In this document: positions 25,835 through 35,938 of the stretch, one piece after another | Layout of the letters: the number at the start of each line of letters is the position of its first letter | Numbering within the stretch: position 1 is the stretch's first letter | NCBI GenBank assembly: GCA_043228905.1 | Contig: JBHGNT010000010.1 | Span: 22,272,657-22,336,656, forward strand | Direction: 5' to 3' | DNA length: 64,000 nucleotides | Source of the DNA: Azolla caroliniana | Taxonomy: Eukaryota > Plantae > Polypodiophyta | Made by a program: the position numbers and the translations under genes | The notes under the pieces: model-generated | Told to the model about the DNA's origin: nothing | Seen by the model: the letters and a program-made list of their open reading frames with translations, nothing else | The model's database searches: none

Positions 25835-27676
25835 GGTGACTACTGAAGCCGAAGTGGGTTGGTTATGGAGAGGCCAATCGCTTCAGAGGACAGGAGGGGC
25901 AGGATTCTTCGTACGTTCCTTCCTTCCTTCCTTTCATTGGAAAGACGCTGAAAAGTTTGGTAGTGGTTGGCGGCGGCAGCAGCATTGGATAAGAAAGACA
26001 GAGAGCAGAAGGAAATGAAGAGAAAAAAGAAAGAGGCTCTGCTCTGCTCTATGATTATCCATCCATCTCCCCCGGGAAGCACTAGCAGGCCGCCTCAATC
26101 AATAAGTAATATAGAATGGATGGATGGAGGCACACATAATAATACATTCACACACAAAGAAAGACCCAATGCCTCTCTCTCTCCCTCCCTCCCATTTTAC
26201 ATACATATTTAATGGTATGAGTTATAGAGAGGCTAGAGCTAGGGAATCCTCTCCTCTCTTCTCCTCTCCGCTCTTCTCTTCTCTTCTCTTCTCTCGATAT
26301 TTTACACGTCCAAAACCCCTCACTCGAAGTCTCTCAAACAAAATCTCATAGTCATCCGTAGTGGAAGAGGAGGTTGTGTCGCAAAATTCGGAGTGTGATC
26401 ACATAAAAGCATACAGACTCCTTTGGGGACACGTTGTGTTGATTGGAGACTAGATAGTTAATCCAAATTTCTCCCGGCCATTATCTTTACTAATCAATGT
26501 TTCGAGGAATAGCATGTCATAATGGAGAAAACAAAATCTTTGACTTAATTTGATACAAAATCAATACTTATCGTAGATGACCAGCATGGGTTTACACATG
26601 AGGTGTTCTCCAAGGGTGTTGTGGGCACAAACCTTAGGTAAGCCAAGGCTATTCTAATATTGGTATGTGCACAAGGCCAAGTATACACTTGATAAGTTAA
26701 TTTCTATGTCCCTTTTCGCGATCTACTTGACATTTGTACCAAGTCTAATTGGGAGTCTCCATCGCCATCATAGCAATTTTGCTTCTAGTTCTCACTACTT
26801 TTTGCTTCATTTGCATGTTTTTCATATCTCTAGGAAATTGTCAAGATGTTATTCACATTTTGATACCTAACATACTTTTGGCTTTTGATTTCTAAATCTC
26901 TCCTTAACTTTGCTTATGTTTTTGAAAAAAGTTTTTTAGTTTTTATGTTTGAAAAGGGTTTTCACAAGAGTTTTAATAGTTGTACATTAAGATGCAACAA
27001 AAATGACCAATATATATACTCATATGCATCAGGAAGTTTTTAAGTATGATTGCCTATTTACAAAACCTAAACATACATTATCAAAGTTTGAGGCTCCTAA
27101 TCACATGAAAAATAAGATAAAACACATAATTGATAATAATTAAATAATCATCATATGTCTTTGAGGATACACCTAATCAACATAAATATTAATTATTAAG
27201 AATCATATATTAACCTAATCATCATAATAATGTCGATTATTAGCTCCTAGAAGAAGTCGCTTAATAAATTACGTTCGTATTTAGAAACATTAAGCATCTA
27301 ATTCTCATTTGATATACCCCACCATCTAATTCATAATATAGCAAATAACAATTCTAATTTGATAGATCAAATAAATCAAGCTAGCTTTCTAACTGATAAT
27401 TAAATCTTGCAATTAGCAAAACTTGATTCCTACTTATTGTAAATTAATCTTTATAATCTCACAGAATTTGTTTCAATGTTTATTTATATATATGCTTGGT
27501 CAAAGTTTGGCTCACAAGCACATATGAAATTAAGAATGAACACATAATACATAATACACAATTTATTAATTTCTTATATGTACATATAATCATGTCGTGG
27601 TAATTTACCCTAAGATGAACTGATTAGAGCACATGCAATGGCTAACTTCTCACAATGGCTTCACAATAGCTCTTTT

Positions 27677-30042
27677 TTACTCATCTGAAATGGCATACCC
27701 TTGTGATAGTTTAGCATTAATGTTGTTTAGCCGGGCATACATATATGTATTACTATTATCAGCCCCATCAAATGAAGACATATCATTACCTGTGACATCA
27801 GTCCATTGAGAACATCCTGGACTACCCAATGCTTTATTTTTCACTTTCCAAGCTTCAATTTCATGGGCCTCTGTTTCCATGCCAGCAGCAGCATATATAT
27901 TTGCCATGGAGATATATGCACTGGAACACTTCTCATCTAGCTGTATTGATTGTTCAAAGGCCCATTGTGCAAGCTTCATATTCATCCATTTCCGACAAGC
28001 GTTGAGTATACCCAGCAACAATGGAAGATGATACGAAGGTTGCACCTTGTTCAGCAAAAGCTTGGCCTTTCCAAACTGACCAGCACGTCCAAATAGATCA
28101 ATCATACAAGCATAATGTTCTATCATAGGATTGAGACGGTAAATGGTCCACATATCATCAAAAAACTTTTCTCCCTCCTCCAGAAGACCAGCGTGACTAC
28201 ATGCTGTAAGTAATACAAGAAATGTGACCAGATCTGGCATTATGCCATCAGCCTTCATTTTTCTAAACAGGTCCAGAACCACATTTGCTTGACCTAACTG
28301 AGCATATCCAAACATTAGTCCAGTCCAGCACACAACATCATGTACTGTAAGAATGTCAAATACTTCTTGTGCTTTCTTAAGAGCACCACATTTAGCATAC
28401 ATATCTAGCAACGAATTGCCAAGCATAATGTCTCTCTGTAATAATCCTTGTTTCCTTAGTTCAACATCTATGTTTTCCCCGATTTGAAGAGATCCTATGA
28501 TGCCACATGCTTTCAAAACACAAAGAAAAGTTACTGGATTTGGCACAATTCTTTCATCCTGCATCTGTTTGAAGCACTTCAAGGCTTTATCAGCATTACC
28601 TTGTTGGGCATATCCTTCGATCATAGAAGTCCATGCCACACCATCACGGAATAGAAGTTGTTTAAATGCTTCTTGTGCTTTCTCAAGGGCACCACACTTC
28701 GCATACATGTCTACCAATGCATTTCCAAGCACCGAGTCTTTTTGCAAAAATCCTCTTTTTCTCACCTCAGCATGTATTTCTTCCCCAATCTTCATTGATC
28801 TTACAATACCACAAGCTCTCAGAATGCAAACATAAGTTACTCCATCAGGGAGCGCTCCCGCATCCCGCATGAGTTGAAAGCATTTCAGGGCTTCATCCCC
28901 AAGTCCGTATTCAGTGTACCCAGCTATCAATGCATTCCAAGCCACATTATCCCGTGATGGAAGTTGATCAAATACTTCTCGAGCTTTTTGGAGGGCACCA
29001 CATTTGGCATACATGCCCAGCAATGTTGTAGCAAGTAGAATGTCTTGTTGCAACAAACCACACTTTCTAATCTCAGTGTCGATTTCTTGGCCGAGTTCAA
29101 GAGATCTTATAACACTACATGCTTTCAGAACACAAATATAGGTTATCGCATCTGGACAAACACCCTCATCCTGCATTTTCCTGAACCATTTAATGGCTTT
29201 ATCACCAAACCCATGCTGGATATACCCAGCTATCAATGAATTCCAAGACACAACATCTCGCTTCGGAAGCTGCTCAAATACTTCTCGTGCTTTCTCAAGG
29301 GCACCACATTTCGCATACATATCAACCAAAGTATTGCCGAGCACAATGTCTTTCTCCAATAATCCTAGCTTTCTCACTCTAGCATCTATATCTTCTCCAA
29401 GGGTAAGACACTCTGCAATGCTGCAAGCTTTCAGAACACATATATAAGTTATTGCATTGGAGGATATGCCCTCGTCTTGCATCTGGTGGAAACATTTTAT
29501 AGCTTCATGACCATGCCCCTTCTGAGCATACCCTGCTATAAGAGCATTCCAAGCCACCACATCTTGTACACTAAGATTTTCGAATACTTCCCGAGCTTCC
29601 CTCAAAGCACCACATTTGGCATATGTAGTGAGAAGGGCAGTGCCCACATACACGTCTCTGGTGATCAAATCTTGCCTAACCATATCCTTGTGGATCTTTC
29701 TTGCCTTGCACAAATTCTTCTCTTTTCCACATGTTTTTATGAGGTTTAATAGAGAAGCCCTGTCTTGAAAGTGAAGGTTCGGTAGCTCTTCAGTCGGCAG
29801 GATTCCTTTCAATGTGAGCTCTATTGTAACCCATGGTGGATTGTGAAGACCATTTTTCCATAGAAGATCCCTAGTTTGCTTATGGACAAAAGTAGGGCTT
29901 CTCTGTGAAGATGAAAATTAGAGGGCTTGATTTGATTCAAATAAGAAAGAAAGAAGAACTGTATGATTACCTTGTTCTCGGGGTTGTGCCAGAATTGAGA
30001 AGGATCTCTGAAGAATTCCTTCCATAAAGAGTCTGTGTCCAT
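27677..30042 (-). CDS. PLS-class PPR protein (17 repeats, E1-E2, truncated DYW/E+) with an N-terminal OSB-type PDF-like motif, ~765 aa
   Basis: Exon 1 30042-29971, intron 29970-29903 (gtaatc...cacag), exon 2 29902-27677 in frame with the 711-aa ORF. Repeats run L-S-(P-L-S)x4-P2-L2-S2 (e.g. VLGNTLVDMYAKCGALEKAREVF, VVSWNSLIAGY), then E1/E2 and PGCSQWTD. No HxE or CxxC deaminase motif. Confidence 0.9.
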
Positions 30043-32301: not shown

Positions 32302-32417
32302 TCAGCTATTATATATGTATGTCCGCAGAGATGTATATTGATGATATCTAATTGAGCTGCCTGCCATTATTTCCTTCTGAGTTTTGGCGGTCTCAATCCC
32401 CATCCAGGGATTCAGGG

Positions 32418-34216
32418 ATGCAGGTCGCATCAACAAACAACAACAGAAGTATTCTGATCATCCTAACCTGCCTTCGACTAATGGGAGCACACTCCGCAAT
32501 TATATACTACATTCTCCTGCCGTTCCTAAGCCATGTCATGTATGCCGCCGCCGCCATTCCTGCTTCACAATTGAAGGTCTACGTGTATGAGCTACCGAGG
32601 AGGTACAACGAAGAGGTGGTGGAGAAAGATCCACGTTGCCTGAGCCACATGTTTGCTGCAGAGATCTTCCTTCACACATTCCTCATGTCCAGCCCGTCCA
32701 TCCGGACCATGAACCCTGGAGAAGCTCATTGGTTCTTTACCCCCGTCTACACCACCTGTGACCTGACCCCCAATGGGCTGCCCCTGCCTTTCCAAGCCCC
32801 TCGCATGATGAGAAGTGCCATCCAATTCATCGCCACACGTTGGCCCTTCTGGAACCGAACCCAGGGTGCTGATCACTTCTTCATTGCTCCTCATGACTTT
32901 GGTGCATGCTTCCACTATAAGGTACACACTTATTCTTAGAGAATACATACATATATGTATGGTGGCACAATCCCACCCCGCACAAATACTAGCTAGCTCA
33001 GGCAATATGCACTCCATGGAGAGGGAGTTTTTATACAAACTACTTACTAGCCCCATATTAATATATACCCTCCAAAAGAACCCACTTTCTCTCGCATCCT
33101 TAATTTTTTACACACATCTAGTGCCACATGCTATGAAGTGCAAGGTCTACACGAGGTTTTGGTGTTGCATTAGGTCTAGGCATGATCTTGTGTGTTATTG
33201 GTGTACACCAACCATTTTGAATGTGGGTTATCATGTTGTCAAAACTACATTTTGAACGTAAATTATGGTGCATGAACGTTTTCCTCAAAGAAAGTGATGC
33301 TATCTTGATTTTTATGCACCTCTTTGTTGTTAAGGAAGAGAAGGCCATCAAGCGAGGCATATTACCGATCTTGAAACGTGCAACGTTAGTCCAAACTTTT
33401 GGACAGAGCTATCATGTGTGCATGCAAGAGGGCTCTATTGTCATACCACCATATGCTCCACCATCAAGGATCATAGCCCATCTGATTCCTCGGAACACGC
33501 CTCGTTCCATTTTCGCTTACTTCCGCGGCTTGTTTTACGATCTCGAAAACGATCCTGATGGAGGTTATTATGCAAGGTACATTACATGCCTATGAAAATA
33601 AAAATGTGTGGTAGAGAGAAATTTGCAATGCAAGAGAGGTTTTAGATGGATGGAGAAGCTAAATCTTTTACTTTGTTGCGATTAACGCAGAGGAGCAAGG
33701 GCCTCTATATGGGAGAACTTCAAGAACAATCCTCTGTTTGATCTTTCATCAGACCATCCTATTACCTACTATGAGGATATGCAAAGGTCGATATTTTGTC
33801 TGTGTCCCTTGGGTTGGGCACCATGGAGTCCTCGGCTTGTGGAAGCTGTGGTGTTCGGTTGTATACCAGTGATAATAGCTGATGACATCGTGCTTCCTTT
33901 CGAGGACGCCATACCTTGGGATGACATTGGAGTGTTTGTTGCAGAGAAGGACGTGGCAAACCTTGACACCATACTCACTTCTATACCACCAAATGAGGTC
34001 TTCAAGAAACAAAAGGCTTTGGAGAATACGTCCATCAAACGCGCCATGCTTTTCCCTCGTCCATCCCTACCAAACGATGGCTTTCACCAAATCTTGAATG
34101 CACTCGCAAGGAAGTTGCCTCACAACCCCAAGATTTACCTTGAAGAAACCGGTACTACTCTACATCCACCTTTCAACTGGACTGCTGGTCCAGTCACAGA
34201 TCTTACTCCATGGTAA
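32418..34216 (+). CDS. IRX10: GT47 exostosin-family beta-1,4-xylosyltransferase, IRX10/IRX10L-like
   Basis: Exons 32418 (or 32481)-32921, 33335-33576, 33691-34216. Motifs LKVYVYELP, HMFAAEIF, TCDLTPNGLPLPF, GADHFF, YFRGLFYD, FCLCPLGWAPWSPRLVEAVVFGCIPV, NWTAGPV.DL.PW*. Confidence 0.95.
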
Positions 34217-34861
34217 AAAAGAAAAGAAAAAAAACAATCCATTTAATCAGATCCAAGATGGTGTGTCAGCCAAGGCCAACAACATTAACACTCACTCCCA
34301 ATTTATCATAAATGATTATGATTCATTTATTTTTGTTAACATACATTGTAGTATGTACATAAATTTATTTTTTTGAATAAGGATTTTAATACATCTACAA
34401 ACCTCCTTTGTATAATTTCATTTTGTTTGAAGATTGTACGTATGTGGGAGGAATTAGCCCGCAAGAGACAATTTGAGTGTTAGAAATACATACATTGAGA
34501 CTTGAGACTCTTCGTTTACACATGTAAACATGTACAATGTCGTCGTATACGGTCTAATTATAGTGGGTGGGGATGATGAGCGCCTCGTTCTGCCTAAATA
34601 AATGAAGCCCCGCTGCAATGGAAATAGATGAGATGGGTGGCTTTTGATTCTTCTTCGTGTTCTTTTTATTTTATTTTTTATCCCTATGCCAAAAATAGGC
34701 GAGAAGAAAAGGCAAAAAACGCGAGAAATTCGCCAAAGTATGCCAAAAATATGTAGCGAGCGACCTCTGTGGCACCTCACCTCCACACACCCTGCGATAT
34801 TATTATATTCTTGCTGAATCCTTTCTCCATCCTTCCCTCTGCACTTGCAGCAGCTTGTTAC

Positions 34862-35938
34862 ATGGCGATGAGCCCTCCTCCTGTCTGTGTAGATCTTGAG
34901 GTATCCATCACCTCCGCTCGTGATTTGAAGAACGTGAATTGGAAGCATGGCGATCTATGTGCCTATGCCGTGGCGTGGGTGGACGAGGAAAACAAGGTGG
35001 CCACACGTGTGGATGCATCAGGCGACACCAACCCATCGTGGGTGAAGCAGAACTTCAGCCTCCCTGTGAGGAAGCCCATCTCCGAGTGTGGACTGAGCAT
35101 AGAGATTTATCATGACAAGGCGGCCAATCCTGAGAAAGCGCTGGTTGGCTCGGTGTCAATCCCACTGCCAGAGATAGTGGATGCCGGAGGGTGCGATGAG
35201 ACCTTAGATTACAGCCTGAAGCTCAAGCGCCCATCTGGGCGGCCACAAGGTAAGGTTGATTTCTCGGTTCGAGTGAGAGAGAGGCGGCGGTATGTGTCCC
35301 CACCCCCTCCCGCCCCAGCCTCCTTCTCCTCCTCCATATACACTACTACTAGTAGTAGCAGTACGTCCCAACCACCCATAAGCCCTAGAGATGGGATTCC
35401 TACCTATACTTATCCACCTTCTAATTACCCCTACGTCCCTACCCCTAACAACAACAGAACGTCATCTTACCCCCCAACACCACCGCTTCCTGCTGCCCAA
35501 CCCTATAATATTGGCCAGCCTTACCCTGGCTATAACACCCAACCTTATGCTGCACCAGCACCTTACCCCACTTATAACACATCCCCTCCTCCCGCACAAC
35601 CTTATGCATACGTCCAACGCCCTTCGCCACCATCTTACGGTTCAGCCCCAGCACCCCAGTTGCTTGGCTACCCACAGGAAGCTCTCCCACTGAAGAAGGG
35701 CCCTCTTACTTCTTCTTCTTCTTCTTCTACTAGCCCATTTGGTGGCATGGGCACGGGTCTTGCCATTGGAGCCCTTGCAGGTGCTGTGGGCGGCCTAGCT
35801 CTTGACGAATTTGTACACCATGAGGAGAAGGAGGCAGCCGAAAGACAAGCCGATGAGGATGCAGATCGATATGCCGAATTAGATGCTGCCCGCGATGACT
35901 ATGGAGGAGATGACTATAGCTATGATGATGGTTTCTAG
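34862..35938 (+). CDS. Intronless C2-domain protein, SRC2-like
   Basis: N-terminal C2 (LEVSITSARDLKNVNWK...YAVAWV...GDTNPSW...LKRPSGRPQGK), Pro/Tyr-rich middle, GMGTGLAIGALAGAVGGLAL and an acidic DY tail. Start ATG at 34862 or 34868. Confidence 0.9.
   Translation: MAMSPPPVCVDLEVSITSARDLKNVNWKHGDLCAYAVAWVDEENKVATRVDASGDTNPSWVKQNFSLPVRKPISECGLSIEIYHDKAANPEKALVGSVSIPLPEIVDAGGCDETLDYSLKLKRPSGRPQGKVDFSVRVRERRRYVSPPPPAPASFSSSIYTTTSSSSTSQPPISPRDGIPTYTYPPSNYPYVPTPNNNRTSSYPPTPPLPAAQPYNIGQPYPGYNTQPYAAPAPYPTYNTSPPPAQPYAYVQRPSPPSYGSAPAPQLLGYPQEALPLKKGPLTSSSSSSTSPFGGMGTGLAIGALAGAVGGLALDEFVHHEEKEAAERQADEDADRYAELDAARDDYGGDDYSYDDGF

Follow-up and report, generated by a model that had tools for sequence, protein, structure and literature searches.

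Editing factors of the pentatricopeptide repeat (PPR) type are usually described as consisting of a targeting peptide, a PPR tract and E/DYW domains, and the PPR tract binds single-stranded RNA with its N-terminal repeats on the 5′ side. Another group of plant proteins, the Organellar Single-stranded DNA Binding (OSB) proteins, carries the PDF motif. The PDF motif of OSB1 has been reported to be sufficient for the binding of single-stranded DNA (ssDNA), for which reviews cite Zaegel 2006 (PMC6963530), and OSB proteins prefer ssDNA to double-stranded DNA or RNA (PMC6963530, PMC4166229). Here we analyze a locus in which a PDF motif and a PPR array appear to be joined. It occupies positions 27677 to 30042, on the minus strand, of a 64,000-nucleotide stretch of Azolla caroliniana DNA (contig JBHGNT010000010.1), which at its full length is referred to as the window. 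An earlier reading of this DNA, made without database searches and called the sequence-only reading below, had proposed that splicing fuses an OSB-type PDF motif, in frame, with a PPR array of the PLS class. The profile searches confirm the motif, and we consider it probable that the locus belongs to an old land-plant family of PLS-PPR proteins with one or more N-terminal OSB-type PDF domains, in which the PDF domain acts as an accessory grip, and that the window copy is eroded.

The motif was assessed with a profile hidden Markov model (HMM) built from 117 PDF motif instances, all of them from OB-fold (OSB) proteins. Exon 1 and exon 2 were scored as separate pieces throughout, and never as one joined protein. 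Exon 1 (29971..30042, minus strand) consists of an ATG and 23 further codons and contains the first half of the motif, the LW..FF.DP..FW.N...K part. Its score is 21.0 bits, for a match that covers HMM positions 5-27 and ends exactly at the exon end. The second half (29816..29902, minus strand; P-T-F-V-H-K ... LW ... NPPWV..EL) starts with the first residue of exon 2 and scores 16.9 bits over HMM positions 31-57, the intervening positions 28-30 being missing. Both halves lie next to each other on one strand and in collinear order. When all six frames of the 64 kb were scanned (2793 stop-to-stop pieces), they were the only two matches, with E-values of ca 4e-5 each (4.1e-5 for the exon-1 piece, while the exon-2 piece scores 19.2 bits); the next best piece has 6.8 bits and an E-value of 0.79. 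With the same OSB-only HMM, canonical PPR-linked PDF motifs reach 58-73 bits, and none of ca 110 PPR homologues without the motif is above ca 2 bits. The match of both exon halves is thus far above chance. The assignment of this segment of ca 50 residues to the PDF motif of OSB type, which the sequence-only reading had made by eye, is therefore borne out by a model that has seen OSB motifs only, and so is the divergence that it had pointed out, from PDF to PTF and from WWDNR to FWHNP.

In the reverse direction, a second profile was built from aligned PPR-linked motif pieces only, taken from the loci of relatives and from the window, and was searched against 1.84 billion representatives. This profile retained 32 positions, all of them in the second motif half, because the first-half rows made up exactly half of the alignment. 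It collects 414 proteins at E ≤ 1e-3 and 73 at E ≤ 1e-10. Among these are a Populus nigra protein annotated as 'protein OSB1, mitochondrial-like' (P0188, 4.7e-12), which has a weak Pfam SSB match at residues 74-167, an Anthurium 'OSB3' (P0172, 4.9e-13), and also OSB3 of Amborella, Lupinus, Cajanus and Chenopodium. Within the best 150 of the 414 matches, 61 have an OSB-type OB fold and 11 have PPRs, the rest being mostly short fragments. Pfam has no family for the PDF motif. A 5-mer word search with the first 45 residues of exon 2 returned nothing, since the window motif is too diverged for words of this length, and a word search for OSB-sized proteins with the PDF half of a 300-residue Sphagnum reference returned only Sphagnum PPR fragments.

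It could be argued that the resemblance is a matter of chance or composition, considering that the halves are as short as 23 and 29 residues and reach only ca 17-21 bits apiece. However, they are collinear, adjacent and unique in 64 kb, and they fit closely to the PDF-PPR copies of ferns, with a WKEFFRDPS stretch in common with Adiantum P0051. Furthermore, the exon-1 half lies outside the profile that gathered the OSB proteins, and its match is therefore independent of that step. We regard the likelihood of a chance resemblance as negligible, the OSB-only HMM and the six-frame scan having already refuted it.

The fold of the domain was examined on the PPR-linked PDF of Sphagnum (70 residues, 29-row alignment), for which the AlphaFold2 model has a pLDDT of 87.6 and a pTM of 0.73. 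The predicted layout is helix-strand-helix-strand-helix. When compared with the ESM Atlas, this model superposes on three PPR/DYW clusters (127, 63 and 57 members) with TM-scores of 0.83-0.87, and on a plant cluster designated 'single-stranded DNA-binding protein family' with a TM-score of 0.80 and a root-mean-square deviation of 1.9 Å over 63 residues, in line with the proposed kinship to the OSB motif. The ESM Atlas model of Adiantum P0029 agrees with this picture. No resemblance was found among the solved structures of the PDB (Foldseek E > 6; VIA-align Z ≤ 3.6), and the viral structure models gave nothing above noise. As there is no solved structural relative, the fold suggests no mechanism. 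Taken together, the profiles run in both directions and the predicted fold show this N-terminal part to be genuinely homologous to the PDF motif of OSB proteins.

We now turn to the gene model. Read on the minus strand, the first exon has 24 codons, from the ATG at 30042 to a final AAC AAG, which ends at 29971. An in-frame TAA is located two codons upstream of this ATG, and the five residues M-D-T-D-S are all that precedes the PDF motif. In this model the predicted protein has no targeting leader peptide, and an upstream exon is possible. The predicted intron (29903..29970, minus strand) has 68 nt and is of the GT-AG type and in phase 0, directly after the codon for the motif's conserved Lys (HMM position 27). 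Read from 29970 to 29903, it begins with gtaatc and terminates with tcttcacag, is U-rich, and contains a CTAAT branch-like site. Exon 2 (29902-27677, minus strand) begins with AGA AGC CCT at 29902, and its frame is open for 741 codons up to the stop at 27679-27677. The 711-residue open reading frame (ORF) in the mechanically generated list is the portion of this frame that starts from a TTG at 29812. That the intron joins exon 1 in frame to this ORF, as had been suggested, is supported by the reading frame and the splice sites.

The position of the intron can be compared with those in relatives. In the window, the junction reads AAG|gtaatc...cacag|AGA. The annotated gene of Calypogeia fissa has an intron of 135 nt at the same codon and in phase 0 (AAG|gtaaac...tgcag|GGA), and a Sphagnum contig has one of 156 nt with an in-frame acceptor (AAG|gtaagt...aaaag|GTG). 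On the contig of the closest relative, only the acceptor is seen (...gacag|AGG), with the second motif half directly after it. The conserved position and phase in liverwort, moss and window give good indirect support for the 68 nt being spliced out.

Another option considered is that exon 1 plays no part, with the 68 nt retained and translation starting further down in exon 2, in which case the PDF halves would be mere relics. The motif is indeed degenerate, and the relatives P0035, P0003 and P0001 are annotated without the first half; these truncated annotations arise, however, because ORF callers cannot see the intron. The earliest ATG within exon 2 is ca 73 codons in, and a start there would cut into the first PPR repeats. 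Moreover, the exon-2 frame is open as far as the splice acceptor, which fits exon 1 supplying the start codon, and the canonical donor and acceptor fall exactly at the intron site that is annotated in Calypogeia and evident in Sphagnum. We therefore find it very improbable that exon 1 is unused.

The 120 best whole-protein matches are all PLS-class PPR proteins, the top ones being from ferns with at most 56% identity. A pattern scan of these 120 finds textbook PDF motifs ahead of the PPR array in four Adiantum, one Diphasiastrum, two Sphagnum and one Calypogeia protein. Among the PDF-PPR proteins of these genera, those with canonical motifs include P0029, P0051, P0055 and P0003 in Adiantum, P0085, P0164, P0226, P0239 and P0254 in Diphasiastrum, P0069, P0035, P0180 and P0283 in Sphagnum, and P0097 in Calypogeia. 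By these sequences, the architecture is shown to recur in four non-seed lineages, namely ferns, a clubmoss, peat mosses and a liverwort. The spacing from the PDF motif to the first repeat is 12-20 residues in the family, and the window, with a linker of ca 17 residues to the first PPR-like helix pair (29765..29815, minus strand), has a layout like those of P0029, P0051, P0069, P0097 and P0035. Some members have tandem PDF motifs before the array, three in P0149 and two each in P0085, P0163, P0164 and P0226, which mirrors the 1-3 PDF copies of OSB proteins. In a tree of 192 motifs (58 columns), the labels change 9 times, compared to ca 35 times when shuffled, which means that the motifs are clustered.

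The view of the locus as an isolated chimera does not hold up against these results, as PDF-PPR genes are present in liverwort, mosses, clubmoss and ferns, with the intron inside the motif conserved. On the other hand, the impression that the architecture has no functional description stands: a full-text literature search, with incomplete coverage and several PPR surveys outside it, turned up no publication connecting the PDF motif with PPR proteins. The family thus appears to be old, and we found no published description of it.

Downstream of the linker, the exon-2 product was characterized with Pfam, which gives PPR_2 (2.2e-88), PPR (1.1e-77) and the E_motif (29.4 bits, with a cut-off of 27.3); only PPR/TPR-type families and the E motif were matched, and no SSB or other non-repeat domain. 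The PLS-class array (27983..29764, minus strand) starts with L-S, continues with four P-L-S triplets and ends with P2-L2-S2. Its period is 102 residues, as seen from the spacing of the repeat anchors, which are five WN/WT P-starts, five YAKCG S motifs and four LKAC L motifs. The E1/E2 extension motifs follow (27809..27982, minus strand), the Pfam match covering residues 641-698 of the exon-2 product. The protein therefore has the alternating P/L/S repeats leading to P2-L2-S2, and the E1/E2 extension, of a PLS editing factor. What it does not have is a DYW deaminase with the HxE and CxxCH zinc sites. Past the E motifs, the ORF enters the former DYW domain (27677..27808, minus strand; PG-box region) for ca 43 residues and then meets the stop at 27679-27677; tblastn with the fern proteins P0106 and P0001 follows this part to ca 27686. 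The HxE region survives only out of frame (27607..27681, minus strand; ..HCEKLAIACAL..) and with two stops, as found by tblastn with fern DYW-type PPRs (60% identity to Adiantum P0106, E 1.9e-4). The CxxCH zinc site and the DYW C-terminal end are absent. The classification as a PLS-E protein must consequently be modified. The P-L-S array and the E motifs are there as described, but the E-type end is that of a PPR-DYW protein whose deaminase has decayed: a frameshift and two stops disrupt it, its end is lost, and the remnants lie frame-shifted past the stop.

The PDF end of the protein shows a similar picture. A conservation table was made from 156 OSB-linked, 21 PPR-linked and 15 dinoflagellate motif instances aligned to the HMM. 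In each of the two plant sets, the conservation reaches 80% or more at the same ca 15 positions (W10, P17, W20, D22, R24, K27, P33, D34, F35, K38, L44, W45, P50, W52 and L57). The window copy retains 11 of these, and has the substitutions W20F, D22H, R24P and D34T at positions that are 94-100% conserved in every set, in addition to the deletion of the three residues at HMM positions 28-30. Measured against the full PDF signature (W..(F/L)F..P..WWD.R..K, P-D-F-K-H-K, L-W, P.WV..L), the motif is recognizable yet degenerate. A gradient of decay is found also among the fern relatives, from 23.7 bits in P0003 and 6.2 bits in P0078 to the locus of P0019, where the motif is barely recognizable. On the contig of P0019, a relative with 52% identity, a barely recognizable relic of the second half (L005:630-800) is followed by a run of ca ten Asp; this locus would illustrate how, in a close relative, the motif has decayed completely. 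Overall, the window copy has the appearance of a paralogue in which constraint is relaxed at either end.

This raises the question of whether the window copy yields a working protein at all. It might be a pseudogene or nearly so, a paralogue in a real family whose ORF is intact only as the decay is recent. The four replaced and three deleted residues of the PDF motif point in this direction, as do its score of ca 38 bits summed over the halves (vs 58-73 bits for canonical copies), the destruction of the DYW domain, the in-frame stop two codons before the ATG together with the absence of a leader peptide from the model, and the gradient among the fern relatives. However, the 741-codon ORF is uninterrupted with well-kept PLS repeats, and the splice sites, their phase and the start codon are intact. 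It is also established that E/E+ PPRs truncated at the DYW domain function in angiosperms with deaminases provided in trans. We consider the pseudogene scenario quite possible, at somewhat below even chances. The intact 2.2-kb ORF and the splice signals indicate that the copy is not long dead; it would at best be a site-recognition factor that needs a deaminase in trans, and may equally be a nascent pseudogene. As such, the window locus is one more, eroded member of the family and adds little beyond that, except as an indication that a PPR tract can remain open even where the PDF domain and the DYW end have both decayed.

As to the role of the PDF domain in the family, its placement is informative. 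One or more PDF domains precede the first PPR repeat at a distance of 12-20 residues. Since the N-terminus of the PPR tract lies on the 5′ side of the RNA, and since the PDF motif of OSB1 is reported to bind ssDNA, the PDF domain would most likely serve as an accessory that holds single-stranded nucleic acid, without sequence specificity, at the 5′ border of the PPR footprint. The conservation of the same ca 15 positions in OSB-linked and PPR-linked copies suggests that both are under the same biochemical constraint.

One can also envision that the PDF domain of these proteins does not hold nucleic acid, but mediates a protein contact or oligomerization, anchors the protein to the nucleoid, or caps the N-terminal end of the PPR solenoid. 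Such a role would fit with the PDF domain always abutting the first repeat via a short linker, and the helix-strand-helix-strand-helix fold has, as mentioned above, no solved relative that could fix the mechanism. On the other hand, the conserved positions are aromatic and basic and are common to the OSB and PPR copies, and reviews report the OSB1 PDF to be sufficient for ssDNA binding (PMC6963530). We judge such a non-holding role to be rather unlikely.

Tethering to nucleoid ssDNA by the PDF domain, which the sequence-only reading had put forward beside a use as an extra RNA-binding module, may occur in PDF-PPR proteins. The window copy appears to be a poor candidate for such tethering, because four of the ca 15 near-invariant residues are lost and the model has no targeting leader. 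A more far-reaching scenario would be that a non-seed subfamily of PLS-PPR proteins uses the PDF domain to hold ssDNA or nascent RNA at the nucleoid, such that recognition of the editing site is coupled to transcription or DNA maintenance, that this arrangement was lost in seed plants, and that the window gene is a decaying witness of it. We find this scenario decidedly unlikely.

It is important to point out that a number of observations weigh against the overall interpretation of the locus as an eroded member of an old PDF-PPR family with the PDF domain as an accessory grip. Adiantum P0029 and P0051 and Sphagnum P0069 have no intron at the site, the gene span being equal to the coding-sequence length. 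The comparison of the intron with OSB genes did not turn out in favor of a shared position either: in Populus OSB1, the one OSB gene compared, both motifs are in one exon and there is no intron at the PPR-type position. The intron thus appears to be conserved only within a part of the PPR-linked set. The motif tree leaves the monophyly of the PPR-linked PDFs unresolved. The lost invariant residues, the missing leader and the broken DYW domain speak against full function of the window copy, and the intact 741-codon ORF speaks against a long-dead pseudogene. Finally, OSB proteins favor ssDNA over RNA (PMC4166229).

Some occurrences of the motif outside the PPR and OSB proteins should also be mentioned. 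The dinoflagellate proteins P0144 (Effrenium voratum, 730 residues) and P0148 (Cladocopium sp., 534 residues) contain 6-9 tandem PDF-like repeats that keep the invariant W, D.R, K, PDF, LW and P.W positions. Reviews call the PDF motif restricted to green plants; these repeats may reflect transfer from a green alga, contamination or a greater antiquity of the motif. Up to 13 PDF repeats are found in P0138 (Kingdonia uniflora, 1160 residues; weak SSB match at 935-1023), P0139 (908 residues) and P0141 (743 residues), which may be merged tandem OSB genes or real poly-PDF proteins. In P0190 (Coptis chinensis, 1526 residues), PDF motifs and an OB fold are located upstream of a kinesin motor domain. 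A kinesin-PDF protein as a third architecture was rejected, as P0190 contains the OB fold and is most likely an OSB merged with a neighboring kinesin by annotation. The PDF motif comes across as a mobile module without a Pfam model, and one that is not strictly confined to green plants. Elsewhere in the window, the ORF at 32352-32939 (plus strand) matches an Exostosin GT47 domain (1.3e-29) and the ORF at 34769-35938 (plus strand) matches a C2 domain (6.4e-10), which shows that the PPR gene has ordinary, gene-containing nuclear DNA of a plant next to it.

We finally compare the locus with the known systems. OSB proteins have the same motif of ca 50 residues, the same near-invariant positions and the same predicted fold (TM-score 0.80) as the PPR-linked PDFs. 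In OSBs, however, the motif is C-terminal and follows an SSB-like OB fold, whereas in the window there is no such fold upstream of the motif, which is N-terminal, five residues from the start codon and before the PPR array. The OSB PDF also has W20, D22, R24 and D34, all of which the window copy lacks. In terms of its domain content, the window protein thus shares the PDF module only, and is not an OSB protein. With the PLS-class PPR-DYW and PPR-E editing factors (Physcomitrium PPR56 and PPR65; Arabidopsis E+ proteins) it has in common the P-L-S triplets, P2-L2-S2, E1/E2 and the start of the DYW domain, and it differs from them by the extra N-terminal PDF, the broken DYW and the absence of a targeting peptide in the model. 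The Arabidopsis E+ factors use DYW1, DYW2 or MEF8 in trans. In heterologous assays of PPR56 in E. coli the N-terminus is removed, and such assays would have overlooked any contribution of a domain located there. A 2026 kingdom-wide survey of editing-factor fusions describes RRM, MORF and RanBP2-Znf, with no mention of OSB, SSB or PDF (PMC13386178); as the PDF motif has no Pfam model, domain-based surveys would miss PDF-PPR fusions. The RRM-PPR, MORF-PPR, PPR-SMR and PRORP fusions likewise combine a PPR tract with a second nucleic-acid-related module, and a conserved N-terminal domain that is shared with, or borrowed from, organelle DNA-maintenance proteins would be a further element in the plan of the editing factors; the domain occurs from liverworts to ferns.

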